From Isurus oxyrinchus (lineage: Eukaryota): 64,000 bases of DNA. The position numbers and the translations under genes are program-made. Position 1 is the stretch's first letter; every line of letters starts with the position of its first letter. Location of the stretch: contig JANJGN010000004.1 of NCBI GenBank assembly GCA_026770705.1, positions 191,952,001-192,016,000 on the forward strand. Direction: 5' to 3'. Positions 39,901 to 63,574 of the stretch are shown one piece after another. The notes under the pieces are model-generated. The model ran no database searches and was not told where the DNA came from. It saw only the letters and a program-made list of their open reading frames with translations.

Positions 39901-39961
39901 ATGACTTCTCTCTACTTTTTACTTTCTGTCGACCTCCTGTCAGCCTTGGTGCAGAGTTACA
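39901..39961 (+). CDS. Leader (signal peptide) exon of the Siglec-15-like receptor: MTSLYFLLSVDLLSALVQSY + 1 nt
   Basis: ATG with G at -3, 20 mostly hydrophobic codons, and a consensus phase-1 donor A|GTAAGT that matches the phase of the 57777 exon. Confidence 0.78.
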
Positions 39962-40564
39962 GTAAGTACGGATCATACCTGTTCAAATTCATTTTGTTAG
40001 ATCACCCAATGTTACCTCATCTGCGGGTCTACTTTTAGTTTCCAAACCCTGGTGCTGTCCAGCATTATGTTTCTTAATGGCGAGACGCGTTTTGGTTGTC
40101 AAACAAATATCAAAACGGGACAAGGTTGCTTAACTGAAGCAACACCAGAGCTCCACTGGCGACATGGCACACAGAAGCTAATGGGAACTTTCAGGGTGTG
40201 AGCGGAGACATAGAATGCAGGTTTCAGAGAGACATTAACTTGCTGTTAAAATAATGTTGAGACTAATGGCGCTCATTTATTATTTATGCACAAATGGCAC
40301 AGCAACTTCACACACGGACAAACATGGAAATCCAAAACTTGCCGCATCATGAAACTTGCATCCTGTTGCTTGACTCACCATTGAGATTTATTGAACACCG
40401 TGAGGTTGCTGTAATTACATGGCGAATGCAAACTAAACTCATTACAGAAAGTTAAAGTTTAATCAATTTCACTCGAAATGTCCTTTTAACGATGTGGTGA
40501 GAGCTCATCACTGTCAGTCAACAACTGTGGTATTGAAATGTAACTGTGACAAGCGGGCAATCTC

Positions 40565-40695
40565 TAGCCTAAACAGCCAAGTGGTTATGATACTGGGTTT
40601 GTAACCCCAAGATCAAGAGTTCAAATCTCACAATGGGAAACAATGTAACTTCATCTGAAACAGATGGAAACAGGTTTGTACTCGAAAGAGTTAAT
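40565..40695 (+). mobile_element. tRNA(Thr-UGU)-like SINE / tRNA pseudogene
   Basis: Box A-like CAGCCAAGTGG, anticodon arm ctggg-tttgtaa, box B GAGTTCAAATC; acceptor stem not intact. Confidence 0.55.
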
Positions 40696-42029
40696 TGTTC
40701 ATTTAAAAGAAAGCAAATATTTTTGTTGCTTTCCGTTTTTGTCTCTTCCTCTCTGTCTCTCTGTCTTATTCTAATCTTTCTTTCCCCCACTTGATTTCTC
40801 TTTTTGTACTTGGCATTGAATTCAGTCACTCCTCCTCCTCATCTTCTGCAGTTTTTTTTTTACCATACTTAATAGGATTAAGGAGACGCAGTTATTTGCT
40901 TTCGCTCAGGTCCCAGATGTCCGGTTTCCTCTCCGCACTATTAGCAACTGGCCACGATTAGTGTAAAAATCTAAACTTGCAAGGGAAAGTCTACTTAACA
41001 GCAAACAACGTTAGGTGTCCTGCTACAACAAATTATCGCCCGTGGAATTAATTGGAATTTACTGTACAGAAACAGGCCATTTGGGACAACGGTTTTTTGA
41101 TGGTTTTTATGCTCTTCACGATCCTCCTCCCACCCCTCTCTATCTAACCCCCTATCTGCGGCTTCTTCTATTCTATTCTTGCCTTGTGTTTACTGAACAT
41201 CCCCTGAAATAAATCTGGGCTCAAGCCTCAACCACTCCATGCTTTATCAGTTTCAACATTTCAACGGCTCACTGAAGCAAAAAGCTTCCCGTTATACTTA
41301 TGCTTACGGCCTCTAGACTCTGGTTCCTCCACATGCCCTGCCTGTCAACCCTATGGGACCCCTTCATCATTCTAAAGACCTCCATCAGGTCATTCTTCAG
41401 CCTTCTCTTTTTTCAAGGGAAGAGCCCCAACCTGTTCAATCTTTTTTTTGGCAGTTATATACTACTCTCCTTTTTTTTTTCTGTAGTTAGGACTTTTGTT
41501 AAAGAACCCTGTAGCTTTGCTCCGTCACTTTACTCATTCCCTCTGCTGCATAACCTTGCTTTGGAATTGGTGATCTTGATCGTGAAACTGGGCTGTCCTC
41601 TGCACAACCTTTCCCGCACTCCTTTTTGCAGAGATCCTTGGTGAGAGATTTTGGCACAAAAAGTCCTGTCACTCATCATTCGAGCTCCTTGATATTGGGG
41701 ATTAAGTGTTTCCTGAACCCTGAGGAACATGCATGTTTAGTCTTGTTGCTTCCATAACTGATGTTTGGCAGAAAAACCTGACCCTTGAACCTCCTGCACA
41801 CTCTGTTGTGAATCCCTCAGCTTTGAGCCAGTAATGTGAAATCTTCGTATAGTGGTGGCTGCTGGCAAATTAACTTCTTCCTGTGTTTCCTCACAGGTTT
41901 GATGAGTGTTCTTCAAGATGCCATGGTATCTGTTGGCATCTCTTACAGAACTACTCAGTCCTAGTATCATCCTTGTAAATATTTTTTGCAACTTCTTCAG
42001 TGCCTCTAAGTTGGGCACCATAGATTTTA

Positions 42030-42855
42030 AAAAATTCTTCCACAGGATGTGGGGTTCGCTGGCTGGGCCAGCATTTATTGCCCATCCCTGGTTGCCCTTG
42101 AGAAGGTGGTGGTGAGCTGCCTTCTTGAACCACTGCAGTCCATGTGGTGTAGGTAAACCCTGTTTTGTGCTGTTAGAGAGGGAGTTCCAGGATTTTGACC
42201 CAGCGACAGTGAAGGAACAGCAATATATTTCCAAGTCAGGATGGTGAGTGGCTTGGAGGGGAACTTCCAGGCAGTGGTGTTCCCATGTGTCTGCTGCCCT
42301 TGTCCTTCTAGATGGTAGTGGTCTTGGGTTTGGAAGGTGCTGTCGAAGGAGCCTTGGTGAATTCCTGCAGTGCATCTTGTAGATGGTACACATTGCTGCT
42401 ACTGTGTGTCGGTGGTGGAGGGAGTGAATGTTTATGGATGTGGTGCCAATCAAGTGGGCTGCTTTGTCCTGGATGGTGTCCAGCTTCTTGAGTGTAGTGG
42501 GAGCTGCACTCATCCAGGCAAGTGGAGAGTATTCGATCACACTCCTGACTTGTGCCTTGTAGATAGTGGACAAGTTTTGGGGAGGCAGGAGGTGAACTCA
42601 CTGCAGGATTCCTAGCCTCTGACCTGCTCTTGTAGCCACAGTATTTATATGGCTGGTCCATTTCAGTTTCAGGTGAATGGTAACCCCCAGGATGTTGATA
42701 ATGCGGAATTCGGTGTTGGTAATGCCATTGAACCTCAAGGGACAATGGTTGGATTCTCTCTTGTTGGAGATGATCATTGCCGGGCACTTGTGCAGCACGA
42801 ATGTTATTTGCCACTTGTCAGCCCAAGCCTGGATATTGTCCACATCTTGTTGCAA
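42030..42855 (-). mobile_element. Family-B LINE 3' portion, nested in old CR1 remnants (about 41930-42990)
   Basis: ORFs 41737-42573 and 42598-42867 carry family-B RT C-terminal motifs. Confidence 0.9.
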
Positions 42856-43059
42856 GGTCTCACCCATGTCCTGTATAACTGAAGCATAACATCCTTACTT
42901 TTATATTTAATTCCTCTCATAATAAAGGATAGCATTTCATTAGCCTTCTTAATTATTTGCACACTAATTTTTTGTGACTCATGCACTAGAGCACTCCTTC
43001 AAAGAGCCCCAATAAATTGCTTAAACATAATTTCCCTTTCACAAAACTATGCTGACTCT

Positions 43060-43370
43060 TCCTGACTCCTTCAGACCGTTACTTCTTCCTCCATCCTATC
43101 TGCCCTCCTTCTTCCCCCTGGACACCCTCTTCTCTCCACACTCCTACCCCCTCCAAACTCCCTCACTTACACCTTCCACGCCTCCTCCCCCGTTACACCT
43201 ACATCCCCAGGTACCATCTTCTCCCTTGTTACCCCCTCCTCCCCCCCCCCCCATACTCCCTCCTCCCTCCCAACCTCCCCCGACACCTTCATTCTCCCTC
43301 TCTCAATCTCACCTCCCGACACCTCTTCCTCTCCCTGTCAATCCTAGTCCTTCCTCTCCCACCCCCACGA
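43060..43370. repeat. C/T-rich low-complexity tract
   Basis: Polypyrimidine and C-runs read directly. Confidence 0.8.
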
Positions 43371-43374
43371 CATC

Positions 43375-43872
43375 ATCCGTTGTGAGTATCAATGGTGACT
43401 TTCCACCTTCTGTGAGCTGCTTCATGGCGGAACCATGCCCATGAGAATCCACCCAGCATCCCATGGATGTTCCTCCAGTGTGCTATTGCTGTCAGGCTCC
43501 GGCATCTTCTGATCCTCGGGTGTCCACAATGTGAGCAAGACCCCGACGGTAAGACTCGACTTCTGCATGTCACACTTGTTAAGACATGTTCTGCACTAGC
43601 GTGTTTGCCTGCCAATATGGGTGGACGATTCAGCGGGGGTGATGGGGGGGGAGGGCATGAGTCTGGCGGGCTGGCATTATAATAATATGCTGATGTATTA
43701 CAATGAGGTTCGCAATATCCGATGGCGGGGAATGTGCCCACCATCAATGGGCTGAGCAGACAATTGCAAACTGGTTTCACGACATTGTGAAACTGATTTT
43801 TGGCCTCGCCATATTGTCCGCTCATGCTACCGAACATGCCCGACGCCAGCGGGCACGGATGATTCCTGGTCA
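43375..43872. mobile_element. Harbinger terminal remnant
   Basis: CpG-rich subterminal sequence ending in a degenerate TIR-like gattcctggtc; resembles other Harbinger ends in the window. Confidence 0.45.
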
Positions 43873-45100
43873 GCCAAATATTCCACCTCCCATTTACTTT
43901 GAAGGAGAGATTCTAGAATATGTTGAGCACTTCCTATACCTTGGCAGGCATCTCTTTCTAAAGGCCACCATTGACGAGGAGATCCAACACCAGATCTGCT
44001 GCGCCAGCTCAGCCTTCTTTTTATATTCTTTCACGGGATGTGGGCATCACTGGCAAAGCTAACATTTGTTACCCACCCTTAATTGTCCTTGAACTGAATG
44101 GCTTGCTAGGCCATTTAGGAGTCAACCGCATTGCTGTGGGTCTGGAGCCATATGTAGGCCAGACCAGGTAAGCATGGCGGATTTCCTTCTTTAAAGGACT
44201 TTAGTGAAAAGGTGGGTTTTTACAACAATCAATGATAGTTGTTGTCATGGTTACTATTTCTGTGACCAGCTTTATGTTCCAGATTTATTAATTGAAGTTA
44301 AATTCCACCAGCTGCAATGATGGGGATATGAACCTGGGCTTCTGCGATTACTAGTCCAATGACATCACCACAATGCCACCATCTCCCCCTTCTACAAATT
44401 ACGGCAGTGAGTGTTTGACAACAAATACCTCTGCAACTCAACAAAACTCCTTGTGTATAGAGCAGTTGTTGTTACCACACAGCTGTACTGCAATGAGACC
44501 CGGTCTGTGTATCAGCGACACATAATAGCACCAGAGAAATTCCATCAGCGATGTCTCTGCCGGGTCTACCAGATTGAGAGGACCTTCGAACTAATGCTAG
44601 TGTCCTTCTTGAAGCCAGCTCCACAAGCATTCTGGCAAAACTCCGAGATCAACTTCAATGGACGAGATACTTGTGTCCAGATGGCCAAGAAGCATCCCCC
44701 ACCCCAGGTCCTGTTTTCTCAACTCTCAAATGGCCAGCGTTCCAGAGAGGACAAAGAAAATGCTTCAGAGACACCCTGAAGCTGTCCTCGATGTGCGACA
44801 ACATTGACATTAATGACTGGGAGGAGCTCGCTACCAATCACTCAAAATGGCAACAGCTTGTCCATCGAGCTGCATCAAGCTCTGAGTCACAACGTCTTAA
44901 TGAAGCAGAACAGCGTCAGAAGGAAAGAAAAGGATGCAAATCCTGCACTCCGGATCCCACTATGTCATGGGATGTCATGCTCCATGTACCCAAAGATCTT
45001 TGGGTCTGTTCAGTCACATGAAGACTAATGGCAGACCCTCATGGCCCTGAGCAGACATCATACCCCAACTGAGAGACAGCCGACGAGACGATGATAATGA
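43873..45100 (+). mobile_element. RTE-clade (BovB-like) LINE 3' fragment, split by a SINE
   Basis: LEYVEHFLYLG..IDEEIQHQICCASSAF; TKLLVYRAVVVTTQLYCNET; EKFHQRCLCR; RGQRKCFRDTLK. Confidence 0.82.
44019..44389 (-). mobile_element. tRNA-headed SINE with family-B LINE tail
   Basis: Box A TGGCATTGTGG and box B GGTTCATATCC on -. 3' tail caaggacaattaaggg..aaatg..gccag..gcccacatccc. CCTTCT repeated at both flanks. Confidence 0.82.
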
Positions 45101-45102
45101 GA

Positions 45103-45290
45103 CTATTGCTGGGTCAAAATCCTGGAACTCCCTCCCTGACAGCACTGTGGCTGTACCTATACCACATGGACTGCAGCGGTTCAAGAAGGCAGCTCACCAC
45201 CACCCTCTCAAGGGCAATTAAGGATGGGCAATAAATGTTGGCCCAGCCAGCGATGCCCAAACCCTGTGAATGAATAAATTTAAAAAAAAA
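45103..45290 (+). mobile_element. Family-B LINE 3' tail
   Basis: ctggaactccctccct...ggactgcagcggttcaagaaggcagctcaccacc...gaatgaataaa. Confidence 0.88.
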
Positions 45291-45299
45291 CTACTTATG

Positions 45300-46540
45300 A
45301 AGTTGATTATAGAGAAGAACATAAGCATGACAAAAGAAAAACAGGTTAATAGTTTGGAGAAACGCTGATTTTGAAGGGCTGTGATTAGAACTTGGGAAAA
45401 TAAAATGGCTGGCACAATTGGAAAACAGCAATATAGCTCAACAATGGGAAACATTTAAATAGGAAATATTAAAACAGTATGCAGGAAAAATATATTCTGC
45501 TAAAAGGAAAGAACACATTAAAACTCTTTAGACAAATAAAACACAAGGGAACAGTTGAAAGTTGGAAAAGAGGCATACACTAAGTGCATAGGAGCAGAGA
45601 AGTGATAAGAGAAGATGAAGAGATTAGGAAATCAGTAAAACAGAGCACTTCGGAAAACAAAGAGGAACTATGAAATTAAATTATCAAGAAACATTAGATA
45701 AAATAATATAAAAGTGCATCAATTAAAGAAAGGAATGAAGGCTATGATGAGATTAGGACCATTAATATACAAACAAGATAATACCACAAGTAATGATAGA
45801 GAGATGACAGAAATATTAAATTATTATTTTTTCACTTCAATATCTACCAGGTAGACAAGACATTGAATGATGAGATAAACATTGAGATAAGTGCATTTAA
45901 AATAAAAAGGGGTGTATTGAATAAATTGAACAATGAAGTTAAAGCCCCAGCCCAGATGGTTTTCATCTCCATATTTTAAAAAAAATCTAGAGAAGAGATA
46001 GCAGAGACATCACTACTAATATTTAATAATTTGTTAGAAAAAGGAGTAGTGCCTGAGGACTAGCAGATAGCTAATGTAATTCCTATATTTAAGAAGGTGA
46101 TAGAACATGTCCAGGGAATAATGGCATTTTTACTAAAGGAGAGAATAGAAGAACATCCGGGAATGAGAAGTATAGTAATGAATAGTCAACATGAATTTCA
46201 AAAGGGAAAATGTTGCTTGACCAACCTTATTGAACTTTTTGAGGAGGTAGCAGAGAGAATGGACAATGGTAATGAAGCGGATGTCATTTATTTGGACTTT
46301 CAAAAGGCTTTCGATAAGGTGCCCCATAATAGACTAATGAATAAGGTCAGAGAACGTGGACTCGGGGGACATGTGGGAGAATGGATTGCTGGCTGGCTTC
46401 TAGACAAAAAGCAGAGAATCATAGGAAAGCGTAGTTATTCAGAGTGACAAAAAGTGGGAAGTGGTGTTCCACAGGAATTAGTGCTGAGATCACCGCTGTT
46501 CACAATTTACGTTGATAATTTGGACTGTGGAATTATAATA
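45300..46540 (+). mobile_element. Old AT-rich CR1 ORF2 fragment (probably continues at about 51150-51920)
   Basis: SQHEFQKGKCCLTNLIELFE, IYLDFQKAFDKVPH. Confidence 0.85.
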
Positions 46541-46544
46541 ACAG

Positions 46545-47345
46545 TGTTATGACACAGCAGTTGGTAACGGCTGAGTTATTTAAAATCCCAGAGGGAAACA
46601 TTAAACAACTGTCATAACCTATATTTTCAATTGGTATGTTTGAGATGCAACTCTAAATTCAGAAATGAAACCACCAAGCCTCCAGAGATTTATTATATAA
46701 ATTCAATTAAACATTTATTAATTTACAAGGAATTAATCACATGCACATCTACAAATTACTACCATAATAACTTTTAAACACATCCCCAAATTAATCACTC
46801 CCAGGTAAACCTTCCCCAAGCATCAATAACCCATAGACTTTAAGCAGACACTAGGCAAAGCAAATTTTATCTTATGAATTCAAAATGAGTTTCCTTTCAA
46901 TGTGGTTCCTTCACACAGTTGTAGGTGTACAGGCAGCATCCATAAGACTAAAAGACATTGGAGCAGAAATTAGGCCATTCGGCACATCGAGTCTGCTCCG
47001 CCATTCAATCATGGCTGATAAATTTCTCAACCCCATTCTGTTTTCTATATACCTAGCCATCCCTTTGAATGCAAATTCTCATTGTATCACCAGGCCCTTT
47101 GAACTCCACCTCTTCAAACAACAAAACCCCTTTCATAGTACCAGTTTTATTAGTAATATAAATATATTGCTTGGTCTCTCTGAGATAGGTGCAAGAATTC
47201 ATCCCCAGTCTTTTAATGGTTTATTCAACAAATTGCATATGTGCTTTTTACCTTACCTGTTTCACATCTCAAAATTAATCTACATAAAAGCATCCAGACT
47301 AGCTGGCTTTAATCGAATTAAGACACATACATTCACATTCACACC
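46545..47345. mobile_element. LTR (solo or truncated) containing a short CR1 tail at about 46940-47060
   Basis: Starts TGTTATGACACAGCAG; aligns by eye with 31744-32604 (aaatcccagagggaaac; ccagactagctg). Confidence 0.72.
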
Positions 47346-47347
47346 CT

Positions 47348-50300
47348 CAGGAAGAAGGGGCGACTGGAGCTCCCACACACGCCGCCTAAGAGCCATAGTC
47401 AGCCATCACTGGTTGGCGCCTAGTGACACCCAGGGTCTATAGATGCCGCCTTTCATTCCTGCAGATGACCGAGAACCAGTGTCGCAAAAGACTGTGCATG
47501 TCTAGAGAACTGGTTGCTCAGATCTGCCAGTCACTGCAGGATTTGGTGCCAAGGGGACATGGAGGGCATCCACTTCATTGGTGCTCAATTTTTATGCCAG
47601 TGGCTCCTTTCAGGGCTCCACAGGTGACCTCTGTGGGATCTCTCAAGCCTCCACCCACAAATGCATCCATTAGGACATGGATGCCATCTCCATGGACCAC
47701 AACTTTGTGCATTTTGCCCAGGATCGTCAGGGTGCAAGAGCGATTGGATTTGCCCAGATCTCGAGCTTCCCACAGGTGCAGGGCGCAATTCACTGCACTC
47801 ATGTGGTGCCCAGATCTCTGTCGCAACACACGGTGGACTACATCAACCACAAGGAGTTCCATTTGCTGAACGTGCAGCCAGTGTGTGACCTCCAGAAACA
47901 CATCCTTCAGGTGTGCGCACGGTTTCCAGGGTTTGTGGATGACACCTACATTCTTAGTCAGTCACAGATCCCTGGAGTCTTCCAGGGTCCACAGAGGCTG
48001 CAGGGATGGCTCCTTGGGGAATAAGGGCTACCCGCAGAGGCCGTGGCTGATGATACCTGTGCGGCGGCCTCAGACTGCAGCAGAGTAACAATATAAAGAG
48101 GCTCATGCTGCGGCTCGCAACTTGGTGGAGCAGATCAGCAGGATACTGAAGATGTGGTTCCGGTCCCTGGACTAGCCTGGTGGAGCCCTGCAATACAATC
48201 CACAGATGGTGTCACACATCATCATCGTTTGCTGTGACTTTTACAACCTGGCGCTCCAATGGGGAGGCTGAGGAGGAGATGGAGAAGCTGCATGTCTCCT
48301 CTAATGAGGAGGACGCCAATGGGTAGGAGGTTGAGGAGGTCCTCGGAGGCAGCGATGATGGGGATGAGGCCCTCGCACTGGCTAGATGTGGCAGGCGTGC
48401 TTAGGAAGCCCTCATAGCTGCTAGGTTTGTGAAAGATGATGACGACATGCAGTGAGGTGACCCCATAGTTCCTCATATCACATTTGTGTCTGGCTTATGG
48501 CAGTGCCAATACCCTCTGTGATAATGCTCCTGTCATAAAGAGTTGGTGAAGGCCCTAATAGCCGCTCAATTAGACCATAAGACATAGGAGCAGAAATTAG
48601 GCCATTCAGCCCATCGAGTCTGCTCCGCCATTCAATCATGGCTGATAAGTTTCTCAACCCCATTCTCCCGCCTTCTCCCCGTAACCTTTGATCCCCTTAC
48701 CAATCAAGAACCTATCTGTCTCGGTCTTATATACACTCAATGACCTGGCCTCCACAGCCTTCTGTGGCATTGAATTCCATAGATTCACCACTCTCTGACT
48801 AAAGAAGTTTCTCCTCATCTCTGTTCTAAAAGGTCTTCCCTTTACTCTGAGGCTGTGCCCTTGGGTCCTAGTCTCTCCTACTAATGGAAACATCTTCCCC
48901 ACGTCCACTCTATCCAGGCCTCTCAGTATTCTGTAAGTTTCAATCAAATCCCCCCACATCCTTCTAAACTCCATTGAGTATAGACCCAGAGTCCTCAAAC
49001 ATTCCTCATATGTTAAGCTTTTCATTCCTGGGATTATTCTCGTGAACCTCCTCTGGACCCTCTCCAGGGCCAGAACATCCTTCCTGAGATACGGGGCCCA
49101 AAATTTCTCACAATATTCTAAGTGTGCTCTGACCAGAGCCTTATAAAGCCTCAGCAGCACATCCCTGCTTTTATATTCTAGTCCTCTCGAAATAAATGCC
49201 AACATTGCATTTGCCTTCCTAACTACCGACTCAACTTACAAGTTAACCTTAAGAGAATCCTGGACTAGGACTCCCAAGTCCCTTTGCACTCCAGACTTCT
49301 GAATTTTCTCCCCATTTAGAAAATAGTCTATGCCTCTATTCTTCCTACCAAAGTGCATGACCTCACACTTCCCCACATTGTATTCCATCTGCCACTTCTT
49401 TACCCATTCTCCTAACCTGTCCAAATCCTTCTGCAGCCTCCCCGCCTCCTCAATACTACCTGTCCCTCCACCAATCTTTGTATCATCTGCAAACTTAGCC
49501 AGGATGCCCTCAGTTCGATTGCAGGAGAATGATGATGATTATGCAGTGAGGACATGCCATAAATCTTCACATAGCCTCTGAGAATGTCTGACTCCTGTCT
49601 GGCTGAGGGCAGCTCGCTTGCACTCTGTGATCAAGGTCATATCATAGAGATGCAGCCATGAAACTTTAGAAGTATCTGATGCTTTGTCTGCCTTCAGCAC
49701 CTGGCCCTTTCAGGAGCTGGAGCACAGCATCAGTGCTGCGACATGACTGAGTCCAGAGGCTCATCATCTGACTCGGACTCAGCAGATTTCTGATCTGCAA
49801 CAGCCCTTCGAGTGCTGGGGGCCTGGGAAGTCCCTGCCACCAGCTGCAGTGCACCAGGCAGTGCGATGTGCTCACCAGATTGTGATCCCGGGGCTATCCT
49901 AAAGCTAGGTCCCACTGAGGTGTGTACCTCTTTGCTGGTGGAGGGTGTGGGTGAGTGCTGTGACGGGACTTCAGGGAGGGTGTCTTCAGATTCCTCTTCC
50001 GAGGTTCCTTCCAGGCTTAACTGGAGGCCCTGGGTCATGGACTCTGTCGGCTGTTTGGCGAAAGCAAGGGGAGATAATTAGTGCATGGCAGTGACCTGTG
50101 AAAGAGGACACATCACTCATGGTTGTCTGATGTATGTTGCACTGCTGGATCCTCACTTGGTAGAGCAGCACCAACCTCACTGTCAGCACAGGACCGTTCC
50201 AGATCCTCGCTGTCCAGCTGGATGGCTCTGTTTTCAAAGTCCGTGAGGACCATGATTTTGGGCATTCCGCTCCAGTCTGTGACCTCTCCCTCTTGTTGTG

Positions 50301-51035
50301 TGCCAGCTTGTCCTGCGTGGATAGAGATGGAGAGAGTATAAGCAGAATGCCTGCCAGGCCAGATGATAAGTATGCCTGGCCTGTGTGAATGTTGAATGGT
50401 CCCATAGATGGGATGAGGACAATGACAGTGAGTGTGAGAGAGTGAATGGCGATGTCCCTTGAACCGGCAGTGAGTCCAGGCCCTGTGGATGTGTGATGGG
50501 TTCGTGAGTGTGTGAGTTGAGTGATGGGATGAATGACTTACCCTGGTGGAACATGGAGGAGATCATTCACCCTCTTGCAGCACTGGGTGGCTCTCCTCTT
50601 TTGCAGGGCGTTGGCACTGACCAGCACTGCCACCACCTCCTAAGGCGGGTTGATGCGGTTGCTTCCCATCCTGCAACCAAGGGTAGAGGGCATCCCAGCG
50701 GGTCTCCATGGCATCCAAAGGTCACTTGAGAGGCGCGCCGCTGAACCTGGGGGCTGCAGTCTTCTTCAGTTTCAGGGCCAAGTCTCCAGTGCAGCAATGG
50801 TGAGCTGGAAGCGCTGAGATGTGTGCTTGCAGCTGGACTTTAAACATGGTGCCCGGCATGATGCAGCGGCAGGGTGATGGTGTGGCGGACGAACGAGAGC
50901 CCACCCGCCTTGGAAACGGCTTGTTTCCTGGGAGTGAATAAATAACGAAGTAGGCTTGGGATGATACAACGTGAAAACCTGTCATCGCAGCCGGCAGCTA
51001 AAACGTTGTTTGGCAAATTTGGGAAAATTCCACCC
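47348..51035 (+). mobile_element. Degenerate Harbinger (transposase on + at about 47350-48455; Myb on - at about 49730-50790; right TIR)
   Basis: FPQVQGAIHCTHV, NHKEFHLLNVQPVCD, RFPGFVDD, GWLLG; KKTAAPRFS on -; TIR GGAAAATTCCACCC at about 51022-51035. Confidence 0.85.
48571..49516 (-). mobile_element. Young CR1 3' portion nested in the Harbinger
   Basis: Open 183-aa ORF2 C-terminus; tail cctatgtcttatggtc. Confidence 0.92.
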
Positions 51036-53238: not shown

Positions 53239-53239
53239 T

Positions 53240-53720
53240 TTTTTTAATTCATCCACAGGACGTGGGCTCCGCTGGCTGGGCCAGCATTTATTGCCCATTC
53301 CTAGTTGCCCCTTGAGAAGGTGGCGGTGAGATGCCTTCTTGAGCCGCTGCAGTTCATGTGATGTGGGTACACACACAGTGCTGTTAGGGAGGGAGTTCCA
53401 AGATTTTGACCCAGTCAAGGAATGGCGATATATTTCCAAGTCAGGATGGTGCGAGGCTTGGAGGGGAACTTCCAGTTCCAGACTCTGCTTTGAAAATAAT
53501 GCTGTGCTCCATAGAACATGAGAAATAGGAACAGGAGACAGCAATTTAGCCCTTCGAGCCTGCTCCAACATTCAACAAGATCATGGCTGATCTTCTACCT
53601 TAACTCCACCTTCCCACATCATCCCCATAATCCCACACAAAAACCTGTTGACCTTTGCCCTAAAGACATTCAGCAAATGAGCATCCACAGCTCGCTAGTA
53701 TAGCGAATTCCAAAGATTCA
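53240..53720 (-). mobile_element. Family-B tail (53240-53475) and CR1 tail (53510-53720)
   Basis: Reverse complements of the two LINE 3' ends seen elsewhere in the window. Confidence 0.8.
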
Positions 53721-54129
53721 TAGAATCATAGGAAACTTACAGCACAGAAGGAGGCCATTTAGCCCATTGTGCCCATACTGGTTCCAGTATACTTATTCCA
53801 ACCTCTGCACATGGTCTGTGACGCTGCTTGACCATTCCATGAGAGCTCCCTAGAGGTCACTGAACTTTTGGATAAAAGGATAGAATATCCATGAATTTCA
53901 GAAGGCATTGGTTAAAGTTTCACATTCAAGACTTTCAAACCGTATGAATGACCATGCTGCAACTGACAAATCAAACTGTTGGCTGCAGGCAATATTGTAG
54001 AATGTGATGGCAAACAGAAAAGATTCTGTGAGGGCCCTGAGATCTGTTCTTCAGGTAACCCTGGGCCTTCCTGACACAATAGAGAGTGTTCAGAAAACTC
54101 TCAGGCACCAAACCCTCTCTTCAAATGAA

Positions 54130-57100
54130 CTAAAAGGGGGAGGTCAAACAGACAGAGATCATGGTACATATTGGTACATATTGGTACCAATGACAAAGGT
54201 AGTAAGAGGGATGAGGTCCTGAAAGCAGAGTTTAAGGAGCAACAAAACAGATTAAAAAACAGGACCTCAAAGGTAGTAATCTCTGGATTACTTCTGGTGC
54301 CATGTGCTAGTGAGTATAGGAATAGAGGGTTAGTCCAGATGAATGCGTGGCTGGAGAGATGATGCAGGATGAAGGGCTTTAGATTTCTGGGACATTGGGA
54401 CCGTTTCTGGGGGTGGTGGGACCAGTACAGGGTGGGCAGGTTGCACCTGAAACGGAATGGGACCAACATCCTTGCGGGGAGGTTTGCTAATGCTGTTGGG
54501 GTGGGTTTAAACTAATTTGGCAGGGCGATGGGATCCTGAGAGAAGGTTCAGCAGGGGGAGATGCACAGCCAAAATTAGAAGAGAGAGCAAGTGAGTCTGG
54601 AAGGCATAGAAATTATAGGCCAGTTAAGGCACAAGGGAGTTTGGCAAGGTTGGGTGGTATTTATTTTAATGTAAGGAGCCTGACGAATAAGGCAGATGAG
54701 TTGAGGGCATAAATTAACACATGGAAGTATGATGTCCTTGCTGTCACAGAGACATGGTTGAGAGAAGGATTTTGGCAGCTCAATATTCCAGGATATCATC
54801 TTCAGACGAGACAGGGAGGGAGGTAAAAAGGGAGTGGGTATCGCAATATTGATCAAGGAATCAATTACAGCAGTAAGTTGGGATGACATCTTAGAAGGCT
54901 CCTCAAATGAAGCCATATGGGTAGAACTGAGAAACAAAAAAGGAGCAATCACATTGCTGCGAGTGTACTATAGGCCCCCAAACAGTCAGAGAGAAATAGA
55001 AGAGCAGATATGTAGGCAAATTTCAGAGAAGTGTAAAAATAATAGGGTAGTAATAGGGGAATTTCAACTCTCCCAACATTAACAGAGTTAGTCATAGTGT
55101 GATAGGTTTCGAGGGAGGAGAATTCTTAAAATACATCCAGAAAGCTTTTTAAGCCAATATGTAGAAGGTCCTACAAGAGAGGGGGTGGTCCTGGACTTAA
55201 TTTTAGGGAATGAAGCTGGGCAAGTGGTAGAGGTATCAGTGGGGGAACATTTTGCAGATAGTGATCATAACTCCATTAGATTCAAAGTTGTTATGGAAAA
55301 GGACAAGGATGGGCCAGAAATCAGAGTTCTAAATTGGGGGAAGGCCGATCAGATCAGATATGATTTGGCCAGGGTGGACTGGGAGCAGATCCTTTTAGGT
55401 AAATCTGCGTCAGTGCAGTGGGACTCATTCGAGAAGGAAATAGGGAGAGTACAGGGCCAACATATCCCAGTAAACATAAAGGGTGGGACCAACAAGTCCA
55501 GGGAACCCTGGATGTCGGGGGACATACAGGATTGGATAAAGAGAAAAAGGAAGGCTTATGGCAGATACCGAGGGCTCAAAACAGCAGAAGCCCTGGAGGA
55601 GTACATAATGTGTAGGGGGAACTTAAAAAAGGAAATTAGGAGAGCAAAAAGGGGCATGAAAAATGTTGACAGGTAAAATAAAGGAAAACCCAAAGTTATT
55701 TTACAAGTACATTAAGAGTAAGAGGATAACTAGGGAAAGGGTTGGGCCCGTTAAAGACCATAGTGGTAATTTGTGTGTGGAGCCGGAAGACGTAGGTAGA
55801 GTTCTAAATGAACACTTTGTGTCAGTGTTCACAAGTGAGAGGGATGACGTGGGTATGGAAATCAGGCAGAAGGACTGTAATATAATTAAAGAAATTAGCA
55901 TAGAAAGGGAGGAGGTTCTAAGTGGTCTGGCAGCCTTAAAAGTAGATAAATTTCACGGCCCGGATAAAATGTATCCCAGGCTGTTGAGTGAGGCGGGGAG
56001 GAGATAGCAGGGGCGCTGGCAATAATTTTCAAAACCTCTCTGGCCAAAGCAGAGGTGCCAGAGGACTGGAGGACAGCCAATGTGGTGCCGTTATTCAAGA
56101 AGGGAGGAAGGGATAAACCAGGGAACTACAGGCCAGTTAGTCTAACCTCAGTGGTGGGGAAACTATTGGAAGCAATTCTGAGGGACAGAATTAATCTACA
56201 CTTGGAGCGGCAGGGATTAATCAAGAACAGTCAGCATGGTTTTGTTAAGGGAAGGTCATGTCTGACCAATTTGATTGAATTTTTCGAAGCAGTCACCAGA
56301 GGTGTAGATGAGGGCAATGCATTTGATGTAGTCTACTTGGACTTCAGCAAGGCTTTTAATAAGGTCCTGCATGGGAGACTGATAACGAAGGTAAGAGCCC
56401 ATGGGATCCAAGGCAATTTGGCAAATTGGATCCAGAATTGGCTGAGTGGCAGGGAGCAGAGGGTGATGGTCGAGGGGTATTTTTGTGACTGGAAGCCTGT
56501 GTCCAGCGGGGTTCCACAGGGATCGGTGTTGGGTTCCTTGCTGTTTGGTATATATAAACGATTCAGATTTGAATGTAGGAGGGTTGATCAGTAAGTTCGT
56601 AGATGACACGAAAATTGGTGGGATGGTAAAGAGTGAGGAGGATAGCGTTAGATTACAGGAGGATAAAGACGGACTGGTCAGATGGGCTGATCAGTGGCAA
56701 ATGGAATTTAATCTGGGCAAGTGTGAGGTGATGCACTTGGGCAGGACAAACAAGGCACGGGAATACACGATGAATGGTAGGACCCTGGGAAGTACCGAGG
56801 ATCAGAGGGACTTTGGTGTGCATGTCCACCGGTCCTTTAAGGTAGCGGGACAGGTAGATAAGGTGGTTAAAAAAGCATATGGGATAGTTCTCTTTATTAG
56901 CCAAGGCATAGAATATAAGAACAGGAAGGTTATGCTGGAACTGTATAAAACGCTGGTTAGGCCACAGCTAGAGTATTACGTGCAGTTCTGGAATCTGCAT
57001 TATAGGAAGGATGTGATTGCACTACAGAGAGCGCAGAGGAGATTTACCAGGATGTTGCCTGGGCTGGAGAGTTTTAGTTATGAGGAGAGATTGGCTAGAC

Positions 57101-57520
57101 TGGAGTTATTTTCCCTGGAGCAGAGGAGATTGAGGGGGGACATGATTGAGGTGTATAAAATTATGAGGGGCATAGATAGGGTAGACAGGAAGGAACTTTT
57201 CCCCTTGGTGGAGGGATCAATAACCAGGGGGCATAGATTTAAGGTAAGGGACAGGAGGTTTAGAGGGGATGTGAGGAAGAATTTTTTCACCCAGAGGGTG
57301 GTGGGAATCTGAAACTCACTGCCTGAAAGGCTGGTAGAGGCAGAAACCCTCATAACATTTAGGAAGTATTTGGGTGTGCACTTGCGATGCCATGGTATAC
57401 AAGGCTATGGGCCTAGTGCTGGAAAATGGGGTTAGAGTAGTTAGGTACTTATCTGACTGGCGCAGATTCAATGGGCCGAAGGGCCTTTTTCTGTGCAGTG
57501 GACGTCTCTGACTCTATAAA
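54130..57520 (+). mobile_element. CR1 LINE: ORF1 esterase end plus essentially complete but frameshifted ORF2 (APE endonuclease and RT)
   Basis: VHIGTND; AVTETWL; VYYRPPNS; DSDHNSI; YLDFSKAFNKV; KFVDDTKIGG; FFTQRVVGI. Confidence 0.93.
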
Positions 57521-57776
57521 ATAAAAACACTCGCAATCTAACCTCGGGAAGATGTTTACAAATCACCTGAAGCACTCTGTGATACTCCAGCCTCTAACTC
57601 ATTCCACAGTGTCTCATGTCCGCTTATAAACCTTCCCAATCTGACCGAACCATGTTACATCTGTTCTAACAATATAACAGACTCAGTATATTGTCTCGTA
57701 TTTTGATTTGGAAACGTGAATATCTTTCCTGCTCTATTTTAATATTCTCTCTCTCTCACTCTCGATCCCCCTACAG

Positions 57777-58169
57777 AGACTTCGGTTCGTGATTGGACAA
57801 TGATGGTCGCGGATGATGTGCGGGTTCGGGAAGGGGGATCCGCTATCCTGCCCTGTCGTTTCACCCACCCACACACTCACCGCAGGGTCAACGGCTTCGT
57901 GATGTGGTACAAACTTCCCGCAGACCTTCATGATCCTGTTTTTAAATGTACATATCCTGGTACAGACCGTTCACAGGGTGAACTGTGTGAGAATGTGAGA
58001 CAGCGGGACAAGGGGAATCGATTCAGATTCGTGGGGAACCTCAGCAGCAACGATCTCTCAATAATGATGGAGCGGCCGAGCCGGGAGGATACCGGTCAAT
58101 ATCGGTGTCGTGTGGAGCTCAATGTGGGCAAATTTGAAGCACCAAGAGGAACGAATCTGACAGTGGAAG
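57777..58169 (+). CDS. SIGLEC15-like: Ig V-set domain exon 1, Siglec-15-like, sialic-acid-binding Arg conserved
   Basis: Polypyrimidine tract plus ctacag| acceptor and AAG|GTGAGG donor; 393 nt, phase 1-1, no stops. WTMMV, LPCRFTHPHTH, VFKC..GELC, RFRFVGNLSSNDLSIMMER and YRCRVEL parallel human Siglec-15 as recalled from memory (WSMQV, LPCTFTHPHRH, VFRC..SELC, RFRLLGNPRRNDLSLRVER, YFCRVEF). Confidence 0.92.
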
Positions 58170-58659
58170 GTGAGGATCAATGTTCAGGGGTTGTAGCTGC
58201 CCTGAGAGTTCAATGGGTAAAGGCTCCGCCTGCTCTGGGAGCTCTCGGGTTTGCTCCTTGTCCTGGGCTCTTTCAGTTGACCTGAGGGAGGAGGCAGTGT
58301 GAAGGAAAGAGAGTAGAGGCTGGGATATGGACTATTCCATCACCTGTCTCTGAAACCTCCCGCAGTCTTTCACACACTCACACAGTCACTCATTTGACCT
58401 GTTCAAACTGGCTTCATGTTGTGGGCTGGGGAACAGAAAAACATCACTGAGAATCCAAGCTCCAAGATCTCCAAATGGGATCCCTCCTCTATAGGCATAG
58501 GCCGAGAACCAGATAGTACCTCCTGAGCTCTCATTGGCTGAGCACATTGCCGAGGTTGAGGAGACCTTCCAGCCCCATTGGCTAAGGACACGAGGAGTTC
58601 CACCTCCCCAGCTTCCATTGGCTGAGAACATCACTTGGCTCCTGATGGAGGCAGCCACC

Positions 58660-58850
58660 TCCAGAAGATTGAGAGGTGATCGAATGGGACATACAAGATT
58701 CTGAGGGGGATTAACAGAGTAGGTGCTGAGAAGATAATACCCCTTGTGGACGGATATAGAACTGGAGGCGGGTTAAAAATAAGGAGCCTCCCATTTAAGA
58801 TGGAGATGAAGAGGAAATTCTTCTCTCAGAGGCTTATTAATCTTTGGAGG
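58660..58850 (+). mobile_element. CR1 3' fragment
   Basis: agaagattgagaggtgat..acatacaagattctgagggg; gaggaaattcttctctcagagg. Confidence 0.75.
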
Positions 58851-58911
58851 TGATGCAGCCAAAAGGTCATAAGTGGCAAAGGAAAAAATAATCTGAAATA
58901 TGCCTTTATAT

Positions 58912-59710
58912 GGGAGGTGGTGCCATAGTGGTAATATCACAGGGTTAGTAATCCAGAGGCCCAGGCTAATATTCTGGGGACACAGGTTCAAATCCCGTCA
59001 CAGCAGTTGGTGGAATTTAAAGTCAATTAATAAATCCAGAATTAAAATCTAATCCAATGGTGACCATGAGACCATTGCCAATTGTCATAAAAACCCTCCT
59101 GGTTCACTAATGCCCTTTAGGGAAGGACATCTTCAGCCGACATGTGACTCCACACCCACAGCAATGCGGTTGGCTCTGAAATGGCCTAGCAAGCCACTCA
59201 GTTGTTTTAAACCTGCTGCAAAGTCTAAAAGGAATGAAACCAGATATGACATTGACCTAGGCACCAGAATCGACAATGGCAAACCTGACCCTGCAAAGTC
59301 CTCCTTACTAACATCTGGGGGCTCGTGCCAAAATTGGGACAGCTATCTCACAGACTAGTCAAGCAACAGCCTGATATAGTCATATTCATGGAATCATACC
59401 TTACAGATCATGTCCCAGACACAACCTTCACCCATCCCTGGGTATGTCCTAATCTAGTGACATTTCAGACCCACCAGAGGTGGCGGCAAAGTGGTGTACA
59501 GTTGGGAGAAGGTTACCCTGGTACAAGAAACAGCTGAAGGCAATGGATAGTGCAAAAGCTATGGACCTGACAATATTCCGGCAAATGGACTAAAGACAAG
59601 AACTCCTGAACTTGCCGTGACTCTAGTCAATCTGTTTCAGTACAGCTACAATACTGGCATCTACTCATCAATGTGGAAAATTGCCCAGCTATGTCCTGTC
59701 CACAAAGGAA
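58912..59710 (+). mobile_element. 5' end of a family-B LINE: tRNA-like head running into the APE endonuclease, then an RT fragment
   Basis: Box A and box B (GGTTCAAATCC) head similar to the SINEs, then NIWGLVPKLGQLSHRLVKQQPDIVIFMESYL; family-B RT from about 59525. Confidence 0.8.
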
Positions 59711-59719
59711 GATGGCTGT

Positions 59720-61744
59720 GGTTTTTTTTTTAATTTATTCACAGAATGTAAGCTTCGCTGGCTGGGCCAGCATTTATTGCCCATCCCTAGTTGCCGTGAA
59801 AAGTGGGTGGTGAGCTGCCTTCTTGAACTGCTGCAGTCCATGTGGTGTAGGTATAACCACAGTGCTGTTAGGAAGGTTGTTACAGGATTTTGGCCCAGTG
59901 ACAGTGAAGGAATGGAAATATATTTCCATGTCAGGATGGTGAGTGACTTGGAGGGGAACTTCCAGGTGGTGGTGTTCCCATCTATCTGCTGCCCTTGTCC
60001 TTCTAGATGGTAGTGGTCGTGGGTTTGGAAGATGCTGTCTAAGGAGCCTTGGTGAGTTCCTGCAGTGCATCTTGTAGATGGTACACGCTGCTGCTACTGT
60101 GCGTCGGTGGTGGAGGGTGTGAATGTTTGTGGATGTGGTGCCAATCAAGCAGGATGCTTTGTCCTGGACGGTGTCAAGCTTCTTGAGTGTTGTGGGAGCT
60201 GCATTCATCCAGGCAAGTAAGGATTATTCCATCACAGTCCTGACTTGTGCCTCGTAGATGGTGGACAGGCTTTGGGGAGTCAGGAGGGGAGTTACTCGTT
60301 GCACAGTTCATAGCCTCTGACCTGCTATTGCAGCCACAGTATTTATATGGCTCGTCCATTTCAGTTTCTGGTCAATGGTAACCCCCAGGATGTTGATATT
60401 GGGAGGTTCAGTGATGATAATGTCATTGAACATCAAGGGGCGATGGTTGGATTCTCTCTTGTTGGAGATGATCATTTTCTGATACTTGGGCGGCGCAAAT
60501 GTTACTTGCCAATTGTCAGCCCAAGCCTGGATATTGTCCAGGTCTTGCTGCATTTGGACATGGACTGCTTCAGTATCTGAGGAGTTGTGAATGATGCTGA
60601 ACATTGTGCAATCATCACGAACATCCTCACTTCTGACGTTATGATGGAAGGAAGGTCATTGATGAAGCAGCCGAAGTTGTTTGGGCCAAGGACAATACCC
60701 TGAGGAACTCCTGCAGTAATGCCTTGGAGCTGAGATGACTGGCCTCCAACAACCACAGCCATCTTCCTTTGTGACTCCAACCAGAGGAGAGTTTTCCCCC
60801 TGATTTCCATTGACTCCAATTTTGCTAGGGTTCCTTGATGCCACACTCTGTCAAATGCTGCCTTGATGTCCTAAGGGCAGTCACTCTCACCTCACCTCGG
60901 GAGTTCACCTCTTTTGTCCATGTTTGAACCAAGGCTGTAATGAGGTCAGGAGCTGAGTGGCCCTGGCAGAATCCAAACTGGGCATGAGGGAGCAGGTTAT
61001 TGCTAAGCAAGTGCCGCTTGATAGCACTGTTGATGACCTCTTCCATTACTTTACTGATAATCGAGAATAGATTGATGGGGCAGTAATTGGCTGGGATAGA
61101 TTTGTCCTGCTTTTTGTGTATAGGACAGACCTGGGCAATTTTCCACATAGCTGGGTGGATGCCAGTGTTGTAACTGCACTGGAAAAGCTTGTCTAGGGGT
61201 GTGGTAAGTTCTGGATCATCCACTAGGCATTTCTAGCTGAAGATTGTAGCAAATGGTGCAGCCTTATCTTTTGCACTGATGTGTTTGGCTCCACCATCGT
61301 TGAGGATGGGGACATTTATGGAGCCTCCTCCTCTAGTGAGTTGTTTAATTGTCCACCAGCATTCATTTTTGGATCTGACAGGACTGCAGAGCTTAGATTT
61401 GATCCTTTGGTTGTGGGATTGCTTAGCCCTATCTTGCGCATGCTGCTTATGCTGCTTGGCATGCACGTGGCCCTGTGTTATAGCTTCACCAGGTTGCCAC
61501 CTCATTTTTAGGTATGCCTGGTGCTGCTCCTGGCATGCCCTCCTGCACTCTTCATTGAACCAGTGTTGATCCCCTGGCTTGATGGTAATGGCAGAGTGGG
61601 GGATATGCAGGGCATTAGGTTACAGATTGTATTCAAGTACAATTCTGCTGCTACTGATGTCCTCATGGATGCCCAGTCTTGAGTTGCTAGATCTGTTTGA
61701 AATCTATCCTATTTAGCATGGTGGTAGTGCCACACAACACGATG
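59720..61744 (-). mobile_element. Family-B LINE, long 3' portion
   Basis: ORFs 59774, 60308, 60502, 60825 and 61233 carry RT motifs (AGVPQGIVLGP, QFGFCQGHSAPD). Confidence 0.92.
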
Positions 61745-62765
61745 CTGTTGGAGGTCAATCATCCCAGTCCTGGGGTATTGCTGAAGAAGTTACTCAGGGT
61801 AGTGTCCTAGGTGCAACCATCTTCAGCTGCTTCATCATTGACCTTCCCTCCATCATAACGTCAGAAGTGGGGATACTCGTGGATAATTGCACAATGTTCA
61901 GCAGCATTCGTGACTCCTCAGATACTGAGCATGTCCATGTCCAAATGCAGCAAGACCTGAACAATGTTAAGGCTTGCGCTGAAACGTGGTAAGTAACACA
62001 ACTGCCAGGCAATGACTATCTTCAACATGAGTGAATCTAACCAGCTGCTCTTGACATCCAATGGCATTACCACCACTGAAACCCCCACTATCAACATCCT
62101 GGGGATTACCATTGACCAGAAACTGAACTGGACCAGCCATATAAATACTGTGGCTACAAGACCAGGTCAGAGGCTGGGAATTCTGCGGCGAGTAACTCAC
62201 CTCCTGACTCCCCAAAGCCTGTCCACCATCTACAAAGCACAAGTCACGAGTGTGATGAACACTCTCCAGTTGCCTGGATGAGTGCAGCTCCAACACCACT
62301 CAGGTAGCCCAACACTATCCAGGGCAAAACAGCCCACTTGATTGGCACCCCATCCACCACCTGCAACACCGGCTCCACCACCGATGCACAGTGGCAATAG
62401 TGTGTACCATCTACAAAATGCACTGCAGTAATTCACCAAGGCTCCTTCAACAGCACCTTCCAGACCCACGATTGCTGCCACCTCGAAGGACAAGGGCAGC
62501 AGATGCATGGAAACACCACCACCTGTAAGTTCCCCTCCAAGCCACACACCATCCTCACTTGGAAATATATTGGCCGTTCCTTCACTGTTGCTGAGTCAAA
62601 ATACTAAAACTCCCTTTCTAACAGCACTGCAGATGCACCTACACCACATGGACTGCAGCAGTTCTAGAGGGCAGCTCACTGCCACCTTAAGGGCAATAAG
62701 TGATGGGCAATACATTCTGGCCTAGCCAGCAATGCCCAAAACCCATGAAAGAATTAAAAAAAGAC
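61745..62765 (+). mobile_element. Family-B LINE 3' portion, inverted relative to 59720-61744
   Basis: TINILGITIDQKLNWTSHI; family-B tail at 62690-62765. Confidence 0.9.
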
Positions 62766-63232
62766 ATACTATGTACATAGGAAATGTCACAGGTTGAAGT
62801 AGTGAAAGGTCATGTTAGGATGATACGTGGAAATTCTCCTTCACACTGAGAGTGGTCAACACTTAGATTGGGATCCCTGGACAGAGTGATGGAGGGGTTT
62901 TGGGGTGAAATCCTTGAATTGATTTAAGTAACAATTACATTTAGCAATTGACGGGGGAGGTGATGTCGTGTTCTGGATGAATGAATTCAGGTGGGTTTAA
63001 TGGATTTTCTGATCTGTAAGTATCAAAGTTCAAAATGAAGGGTGGAGGGGACATTTTGACCAGGCTGAATCCCATAGTAGGATACAACAGCCTGTCTGGG
63101 ACGGACCTGTGAGAAATATGAGTAGAGTTTTTAAGAATTTATTGTATTGTGAAGTTGAAAAATAAATAACAAGTTGAATCTAAAAATTCTGCACACTGAC
63201 CTGACCCATTCTGATATTTGTTCTTTCCTCAG

Positions 63233-63574
63233 ATGTTGGTAGAAATGACTCAGTGGTGAGCGGGACAGAGGGAAATTCGGTTACATTGCCCTGTATGTTC
63301 ACACCCAATAACTCTTTCACCCTGACCACTGTTACATGGATAAGGAAGGATCCCGACCAAAACGTAGTCACATTTCAAGCCCAATTAAATGGATCATGGA
63401 TAGTTGTAAATGCTGGAAATCGGTACAAGCTTTTCGGGAACCCACAGAAGGGAGACGTGTCAATCATGATAAACCAACTGAACATGACGGACAATTGCAC
63501 TTACCTCTGTGTGGTGGAGTACACAGGACCATCTGATTATCAATATCTGATCCAGAATGAGGCACGAGTGCATG
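63233..63574 (+). CDS. Ig V-set domain exon 2 of the Siglec-15-like receptor (lacks the essential Arg)
   Basis: ttctttcctcag| acceptor and ATG|GTAAGA donor; 342 nt, phase 1-1, no stops. Motifs GNSVTLPCMF, VTWIRK, RYKLFGNPQKGDVSIMINQL, DNCTYLCVVE. Confidence 0.9.

Follow-up and report, generated by a model that had tools for sequence, protein, structure and literature searches.

The question raised by this locus is what kind of receptor gene joins a V domain like that of Siglec-15, a drug target, to a second V domain. The passages of PMC7226832 on this receptor describe Siglec-15 as one of four conserved Siglecs, and as a single activating receptor of V-C2 build that is found from fish to man. 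The window, a stretch of 64,000 nucleotides from the shark Isurus oxyrinchus, probably holds the 5' part of a gene for a type I membrane receptor, coding for the signal peptide and two V domains (V1 and V2). The gene would belong to a shark and ray multigene family derived from the Siglec-15 lineage.

The three-exon structure of leader, V1 and V2 that had been proposed from the sequence was confirmed, with both introns and all coordinates correct (Table 1). All three exons are in phase 1, their frames are open, and their splice signals are standard and intact. The great white protein P0225 aligns to exactly these exons and to no other place in the window, with an identity of 95% in the leader, 87.6% in V1 and 82.3% in V2. 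In a tblastn search, its residues 1-20 have exon 1 as their sole match (19/20 identical). The leader-V1 junction, 39961>57777, is a prediction by homology alone. A leader closer to V1 was ruled out, as shark leaders match 39901-39960 only.

Table 1. Features of the receptor gene in the window.
Feature	Position	Strand	Remarks
Exon 1: ATG and signal peptide	39901..39961	+	20 codons and first base of split Lys codon
Exon 1 donor CA/GTAAGT	GT at 39962	+	read from sequence
Intron 1	39962..57776	+	17,815 bp; LINE reverse-transcriptase fragments and Harbinger-type transposase remnant
Exon 2: V1, Siglec-15-type V-set	57777..58169	+	393 nt, 131 codons, phase 1-1
Exon 2 acceptor cctacag/, donor GAAG/GTGAGG	borders 57777 / 58169	+	
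Pro100 codon of V1, CCG	58076..58078	+	core position; Leu in 80/80 other distinct V1 domains
F-strand arginine codon CGT	58109..58111	+	residue 111 of exon-2 translation; aligns with human Siglec-15 R143
Intron 2	58170..63232	+	5,063 bp; LINE/SINE debris
Exon 3: V2, V-set	63233..63574	+	342 nt, 114 codons, phase 1-1
Exon 3 acceptor ttcctcag/, donor ATG/GTAAG	GT at 63575	+	read from sequence

No further V1-like, V2-like or leader-like exon was found in intron 1 by tblastn. Intron 2 gave no C2-type exon, either by tblastn with V1 and V2 or among its open reading frames of at least 45 aa (58170-63232), all of which are LINE debris. When the relatives P0226, P0009 and P0234 were used to search the window for transmembrane and tail exons, nothing above noise came up beyond V2. 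These exons lie outside the window.

Relatives of the gene were collected by a wide HMMER search and a profile search, the latter yielding 94 elasmobranch proteins from 22 shark and ray species at E<=1e-10. Hemiscyllium alone has 10 distinct LOC numbers, that is, at least 10 loci. The family has the V1-V2 ectodomain in 88/116 proteins, a count which, like those of 109, 107 and 80 rows given for domains and tails here, includes isoforms of one gene, so that the rows are not independent. RefSeq names within the family are automatic and inconsistent, among them "uncharacterized", "Siglec-15" and "pIgR-like". Three trees were built: a quick tree of 57 proteins chosen from 153 matching ones, a careful tree of 55 domain rows of those, and a wider tree from which the rows of P0003, P0012, P0018, P0039, P0106 and P0143 were left out and to which 16 other V domains were added.

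V1 is a Pfam V-set domain (E 9.7e-13). Its best match among solved structures is human Siglec-15 (PDB 7zoz, 5.9e-16), followed by CD33 (6.3e-07), and its identity to bony-vertebrate Siglec-15 is 29-35%. The four cysteines of the original prediction (codons at 57854, 57947, 57986 and 58106) and its F-strand arginine were all found in place. V1 YRCRVE aligns with YFCRVE of 7zoz, and the second cysteine pair, FKC and ELC, aligns in sequence with FRC and ELC. In the parts of PMC10264397 that treat these residues, human Siglec-15 has the disulfides C64-C142 and C95-C104, and a role is given to R143. V1 thus bears, as far as sequence can tell, the hallmarks of Siglec-15: a predicted B-F disulfide, a predicted C'-C'' disulfide pair and the F-strand arginine. 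Among family V1 rows, isoforms included, the four cysteines are each kept in 103-108/109 (FKC Cys in 108/109, ELC Cys in 105/109), and the arginine is present in 91/109. In the careful tree V1 belongs to a clade of elasmobranch V1 domains that has 13 rows and a support of 100/98. It groups with Siglec-15 domains, as had been expected, and apart from the V domains of CD33-related and other Siglecs, also at 100/98. Judging from this one arginine, V1 would bind a sialylated glycan. For cloned zebrafish Siglec-15, the relevant part of PMC7226832 reports no strong binding to the glycans tested.

The second domain had been called V-type rather than C2, and this was borne out. V2 matches Pfam V-set with E 1.6e-17 and 64 bits (cut-off 26); its I-set score of 16 bits is under the cut-off of 23.7. 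The two cysteines span 72 residues. V2 is a second V-set domain, placed where Siglec-15 carries C2. It has Val after the F-strand Cys and no arginine there, and an arginine at this position occurs in 0/107 family V2 rows. V2 may serve as a stalk or as a second binding surface. In the careful tree it lies inside the clade of family V2 domains at 100/99. The window gene has the build of the family: leader, V1 and V2 come in order, and each domain falls in its family clade.

A tandem of two V domains had seemed a peculiar exception. This did not hold, since a second group of cartilaginous-fish genes, chimaera included, has the build V-V-C2-TM(Lys) and so carries two V domains as well. In cartilaginous fish, V-V is the rule and not the exception. 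The wider tree unites V1 of this C2-bearing group with bony-vertebrate Siglec-15 at 94/90 and keeps the C2-less family outside. The careful tree leaves the order of the two shark groups and bony Siglec-15 undivided, and a single clade of both cartilaginous-fish V1 groups is not rejected (p-AU 0.495). A position of the family V1 next to outgroup Siglecs, seen in the quick tree, was dropped because the careful tree disagreed.

These trees bear on whether the window gene might itself be the true shark Siglec-15 orthologue, with its C2 swapped for a V domain. Such a history would suit the undivided order of the domain tree, the name "Siglec-15" that NCBI gives to several relatives, and the presence in V1 of both Siglec-15 disulfide pairs, the second of which the C2-bearing group has lost. 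It is nevertheless very unlikely. Family members sit at many loci per species, the full-length protein nearest to the window gene lacks a membrane Lys, and it is the other group that holds both C2 and membrane Lys and has its V1 placed with bony Siglec-15. The V-V-C2-TM(Lys) group is the likelier orthologue. The window gene had been taken for a paralog from an expanded chondrichthyan family, and the many loci and the separate C2-bearing group agree with this. The scope of the expansion has to be narrowed: the C2-less V1-V2 family was found in sharks and rays only, and not in chimaera.

Where V2 came from is a further question. The family V2 clade is sister to V2 of the C2-bearing group, at 100/98 in the careful tree and 85/78 in the wider one. 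As a main claim, an origin of V2 from the Siglec-15 V domain was weakened by the wider tree. V2 could instead have been brought in by exon shuffling from another V-set lineage (pIgR, TIM or CD300-like), which is possible though doubtful. The top whole-chain PDB match of V2 is pIgR (3e-10), with TIM and VSIG4 near, and some relatives are named "pIgR-like" by NCBI. However, the pIgR score adds up several weak stretches, each with about 18 bits, and the best single-domain match of V2 is the Siglec-15 V domain at 38.5 bits. Once the tree includes TIM-like and other V domains, V2 leaves the Siglec-15 group, on a backbone of 20/40; with Siglec outgroups only, it stays inside the Siglec-15 set at 100/98.

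Evidence that the two domains are expressed together is provided by assembled transcript contigs, in which 58169 is joined directly to 63233-63237 (three runs from two studies; X1 and X2 are one sample, X4 is from another study). Such transcripts, joining V1 to V2, had been predicted. The contigs cover 57777-58169 exactly and continue at 63233/63237-63560, so that intron 2 is skipped exactly; in all three, matching ends at 63560, 14 nt short of the proposed donor. Chiloscyllium plagiosum model P0006 likewise joins V1 to V2. The contigs are 95-99% identical to the window and none is fully identical, so the transcripts cannot be assigned to the window copy itself. Splicing joins V1 to V2 in the mRNA of the window gene or of a very close copy.

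Exon 3 is symmetric (phase 1-1), and V2 could on that account be an optional cassette, with V1-TM-tail as the main product. Isoforms with and without V2 do occur on the same N-terminus, in Narcine (P0016/P0161 vs P0019) and in Heterodontus (P0217 vs P0010). As a description of the main product this is quite improbable, since V1 runs on into V2 in 3/3 of the contigs that cover V1, although contigs lose rare forms, and V1-V2 is the arrangement of most family models.

The window copy has several odd residues. Its signal-peptide core contains an Asp, V2 has an extra cysteine (the unique Cys88), and V2 is off-consensus at 8/42 conserved columns, a number matched in only 1/80 other distinct V2 rows, isoforms of one gene included. 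In V1, Pro100 stands at a core position where all three transcript runs read T at 58077, giving Leu. Together with the lack of an identical contig, these features could mean that the window holds a damaged allele, or a paralogue that is decaying or has no function, and that the transcripts come from a healthier sister copy. That is unlikely, if less so than the cassette. The three frames are open and six splice signals intact, and the transcript runs may have sampled different individuals or a sister species. The X1/X2 contigs have 8-11 differences from the window in V1, and X4 differs by about 5%. In V2 the X1/X2 contigs differ from the window at just 2/324 nt; they carry most of its unusual V2 residues, which must then be expressed somewhere.

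On the preferred reading, of an intact member of a shark and ray receptor family, the remainder of the protein can be anticipated from relatives, which pass from V2 straight into the membrane span. A DAP12-type membrane lysine had been expected downstream. P0226, the closest relative of full length, lacks a membrane Lys, and its tail ends in NVTYAAV; such a lysine is therefore not to be expected in the window gene. By analogy with this basking shark protein, the exons past the window would encode a Lys-free span and a long tail. The tails of P0226 and P0009 have a Tyr-28-Tyr-28-Tyr spacing; in the window gene's tail, three tyrosines would likewise be spaced at 28 residues, with a V-x-Y-x-x-V ITIM around the last of them. 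With a tail ending in this way, the receptor would signal inhibition.

Other family members have a P-L-G-x-K span that aligns with the Siglec-15 membrane lysine. Among the 116 family proteins, isoforms again included, a V/IxYxxV/I end is found in 34, the P-L-G-x-K motif in 27, both in 0 and neither in 55. In Heterodontus, P0217 (ITIM) and P0234 (Lys) are 84.7% identical over 300 residues. Sister genes would thus pair nearly the same ectodomain with the Siglec-15-like lysine and a short tail. Nearly the same ectodomains on either type of tail suggest a paired activating and inhibitory set. Differences between close copies mostly change the protein (28/30 of those listed change an amino acid).

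Sharks and rays therefore have dozens of genes in which a Siglec-15-type V domain is part of a V-V ectodomain, with inhibitory tails or a Lys span. More tentatively, the Siglec-15 lineage in these animals may be not a single conserved activating gene but a fast-diversifying paired family, filling the role of mammalian CD33-related Siglecs. On the same tentative footing, the two-V build would go back at least to the cartilaginous-fish ancestor, and may be the ancestral jawed-vertebrate state, later reduced to V-C2 in bony vertebrates. The family offers a natural set of Siglec-15-type binding domains for tests of ligand range, and a case for how paired-receptor families arise. A search for literature on shark Siglec-15-like genes, with subscription journals and supplements outside its reach, found no paper. 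The proteins are already in RefSeq under inconsistent automatic names, and the gain is thus one of interpretation rather than of sequence discovery.

Among known systems, the closest in V1 is bony Siglec-15, compared here through human PDB 7ZOZ, golden mole P0050, bird P0112, frog P0080, coelacanth P0120 and teleost P0065/P0088. Shared are an N-terminal V-set domain with W-S/T-M and LPC.FTHP, the second Cys pair and the Y.CRVE arginine. The second domain is C2 in bony Siglec-15 and V-set in the window gene. The shark and ray family is multigene. The passages of PMC7226832 on signalling give Siglec-15 a membrane lysine for DAP12/DAP10 and no ITIM; P0226 has no Lys and a long tyrosine tail that ends in an ITIM.

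The nearest relatives are from two other Lamniformes, both called "uncharacterized protein" in RefSeq and neither identical to the window. Great white LOC121276821 (P0225) has the same leader-V1-V2 order, in a model that has no membrane span. Basking shark LOC144692089 (P0226) is 77% identical in V2, and the first half of its V1 is missing.

The V-V-C2-TM(Lys) genes are exemplified by elephant shark LOC103174418 (XP_042192165.1), Mobula hypostoma "Siglec-15" (XP_062903801.1) and Heptranchias "Siglec-12" (XP_067838218.1). Like the window gene, they have a V1-like domain followed by a V2-like domain. Unlike it, they retain a C2/I-set domain, and their V1 no longer has the second Cys pair.

In mammals, the CD33-related Siglecs form paired activating and inhibitory receptors, and Siglec-12 has two V domains. 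Their logic is the same as that of the shark and ray family, with near-identical ectodomains joined either to a charged membrane span or to a tail with an ITIM, but it is built on a V-domain lineage from which V1 is well separated.

The sequence bears out exactly the exon borders, phases and open frames of the Siglec-15-like receptor gene. All three exons are in phase 1 and have an open frame, with split codons for Lys at the border between leader and V1 and for Asp between V1 and V2, the V-set domains of exons 2 and 3. Residues 1-20 of the closest database protein, great white shark LOC121276821 (P0225; identity 87.6% in V1 and 82.3% in V2), match exon 1 at 19/20 positions, with no second match within the window. 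LINE ORF fragments occupy both introns and 40 kb upstream, with RVT_1 matches at 8399-8920 (+) and 15545-16099 (-); no further cellular gene was recognized across the 64-kb window.

Receptor exons and transposon remnants in the window
Feature	Positions	Strand	Details
Exon 1, leader	39901-39961	+	ATG start; encodes MTSLYFLLSVDLLSALVQSY; ends one base into a codon, then GTAAGT
Exon 2, V1	57777-58169	+	preceded by cctacag; GTGAGG next
Exon 3, V2	63233-63574	+	preceded by ttcctcag; GTAAG next
PIF/Harbinger-type transposase remnant	1966-2961	+	Pfam DDE_Tnp_4, E 1.7e-30 at 2398-2958
PIF/Harbinger-type transposase remnant	47423-48024	+	DDE_Tnp_4, E 1.6e-07 at 47677-48021; in receptor intron 1
Broken LINE reverse-transcriptase ORFs, many	6500-27000, 35300-38700, 41700-42600, 48600-49200, 55100-57350, 59700-62550	both	

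Domain and homology searches were run with each exon separately. V1 has a Pfam V-set score of 48.7 bits (cut-off 26), and its best solved-structure match is human Siglec-15 (7zoz, 5.9e-16), with CD33 second (6.3e-07). The aligned motifs of V1 and 7zoz are WTM/WSM, LPC.FTHPH, FKC/FRC, ELC/ELC, RFR..GN, NDLS and YRCRVE/YFCRVE. According to PMC10264397, Siglec-15 has an inter-sheet bond C64-C142, a bond C95-C104 peculiar to it in the C'-C'' region, and a sialic-acid contact at R143 on strand F. The four cysteines of V1 and its Arg111 (CGT 58109-58111) correspond to these residues in the alignment, as had been proposed for the cysteines and the F-strand Arg.

V2 scores 64.1 bits as V-set (cut-off 26), while the I-set, ig and Ig_2/3 scores of both domains are at or under the respective Pfam cut-offs. 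Its canonical cysteine pair is spaced by 72 residues, and Val takes the position of the V1 Arg. The top whole-chain PDB matches are pIgR, with a score summed across several weak stretches; among single domains, the V domain of Siglec-15 matches best (38.5 bits). From the HMM and the cysteine spacing, V2 is predicted to have a V-type fold. This is what the original prediction held against a C2 domain, and a search of intron 2 for a C2-like exon found none, only LINE debris. A cysteine at V2 residue 88 (63499-63501) lies inside an N-C-T sequon; the family, meaning the C2-less V1-V2 receptors of sharks and rays, has His there in 86/107 V2 rows and Cys in no other row. This Cys88 may be unpaired.

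Evidence for the splicing of V1 to V2 comes from assembled transcript contigs of the sequencing runs X1, X2, X4 and X6, compared with 57700-63650. X1 and X2 represent one sample, X4 a different study. One contig in each of X1, X2 and X4 (907, 1,546 and 2,024 letters) covers 57777-58169 (from 57966 in X4) and resumes at 63237, 63237 and 63234 respectively. The 4, 4 and 1 letters between replace the first bases of exon 3, so that splicing takes out the 5,063-bp intron precisely at the predicted borders, and the expected 58169>63233 junction is thus present in transcripts of this gene or a very similar copy. In X6, no joining contig was found over the same interval. The X1 contig has 163 extra 5' letters without a match on 57700-57776, consistent with an upstream exon. 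All three matches end at 63560, 14 nt short of the donor, and the contigs extend 23, 822 and 1,182 letters further. There is no GT at 63560, and the last V2 codons vary among relatives (EARVH in the window, ETRLH in great white and ETQVH in basking shark); our guess is that the aligner clipped the matches. Within intron 2, the summed contig depth in X4 reaches 200,000-396,000 at 59690-60286 and 62078-62276, compared with roughly 2-12 over the exons; these two stretches belong to a repeat family very abundant in those libraries.

No contig of X1, X2 or X4 is identical to the window: likeness is 97-98% (V1) and 99.4% (V2) in X1/X2, and about 95% in X4. Of 40 V1 columns conserved at >=90%, two differ in the window; one of them is Pro100, which is Leu in 80/80 other distinct domains, and in all three runs. 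V2 deviates at 8 of 42 such columns, as many as in only 1/80 others. Of the distinct exon differences listed between window and contigs, 28/30 change the amino acid, which exceeds the share of about three quarters predicted in the absence of selection, on a rough reckoning with non-independent runs. Such a pattern could reflect a receptor family that diversifies fast, or else gradual decay of this copy.

Word searches by exon return short shark models only, and a Chiloscyllium plagiosum model joins V1 to V2. A wide HMMER search with V1 finds 280 proteins at E<=1e-3, of which 11 reach E<=1e-30. A profile headed by Mustelus P0009, in which each of the two window exons has a row of its own, finds 99 at E<=1e-10: by source names, 94 belong to sharks (13 species) and rays (9 species), the other 5 to bony vertebrates. 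Hemiscyllium alone has 10 distinct LOC numbers among them. The predicted chondrichthyan expansion is supported for sharks and rays; elephant shark is absent from the 99. Basking shark LOC144692089 (P0226), with 77% identity in V2, is a lamniform, like great white shark, so the window probably comes from a lamniform too and holds either the gene of a further species or a paralogue. The proteins are already in RefSeq as automatic models, under inconsistent NCBI names (uncharacterized, Siglec-15, Siglec-12, Siglec-10, pIgR-like, JAM-like, A33-like, sialoadhesin-like, CD33-like). The literature searched, outside subscription journals and supplements, yielded no paper on them.

A V1-V2 ectodomain is found in 88/116 family proteins; a few have V1 only or V1-V2-V1-V2, and isoforms with and without V2 have a common N-terminus. 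A plain membrane span with a long tail ending V/IxYxxV/I occurs in 34/116, and a P-L-G-x-K span with a short tail in 27/116. No protein has both ends, and 55 (fragments or other isoforms) have neither. In Heterodontus, one ITIM form and one Lys form are 84.7% identical across 300 ectodomain residues. P0009 and P0226 have three tail tyrosines, 28 residues apart. The family Lys span aligns with the membrane lysine of Siglec-15, whose role, with the ITIM signature, is as given in PMC7226832.

A second group of cartilaginous-fish genes combines a V1-like, a V2-like and a C2/I-set domain with a Lys span, such as elephant shark P0027, Mobula P0075 and Narcine P0128; Heptranchias P0029, of the same group, has an ITIM tail instead. 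In a domain tree of 55 rows and 130 columns, all Siglec-15-type V domains separate from six other Siglec V domains (100/98), in keeping with the proposed grouping of V1. Window V1 falls within a 13-row elasmobranch clade (100/98) and V2 within an 8-row clade (100/99), whose sister is V2 of the C2-bearing group (100/98). The V-V tandem thus appears older than the split of the two groups. This tree settles no order among the Siglec-15-type groups. Forcing the V1 domains of both groups into one clade lowers the log-likelihood by 0.02 units (p-AU 0.495), so the data are compatible with duplication of an entire ancestral V-V gene.

In a wider tree of 64 rows, which takes in 16 further V domains, V1 of the C2-bearing group joins bony-vertebrate Siglec-15 at 94/90 without the family, and the deep position of V2 falls to 20/40. 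On this placement the C2-bearing genes appear to be the better Siglec-15 orthologue candidates, and the window's family would be a divergent paralogous expansion, and, as originally predicted, a paralogue rather than the orthologue. In Narcine, Heptranchias, Amblyraja and Mobula birostris, C2-less and C2-bearing members have close RefSeq accession numbers and agree in the length of their longest contig, a hint of one gene cluster.

Some shark models (P0211, P0212 and P0213, from Hemiscyllium and Chiloscyllium punctatum) carry V1-V2-V1-V2 on a single membrane span. Of the lungfish proteins (P0007, P0021), one has seven V1-type domains followed by C2, and Siglec-15 X2 carries a pair of V1-type domains, each most closely related to the other. 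Together, these shark and lungfish proteins suggest that V-domain duplication is recurrent in the Siglec-15 lineage.
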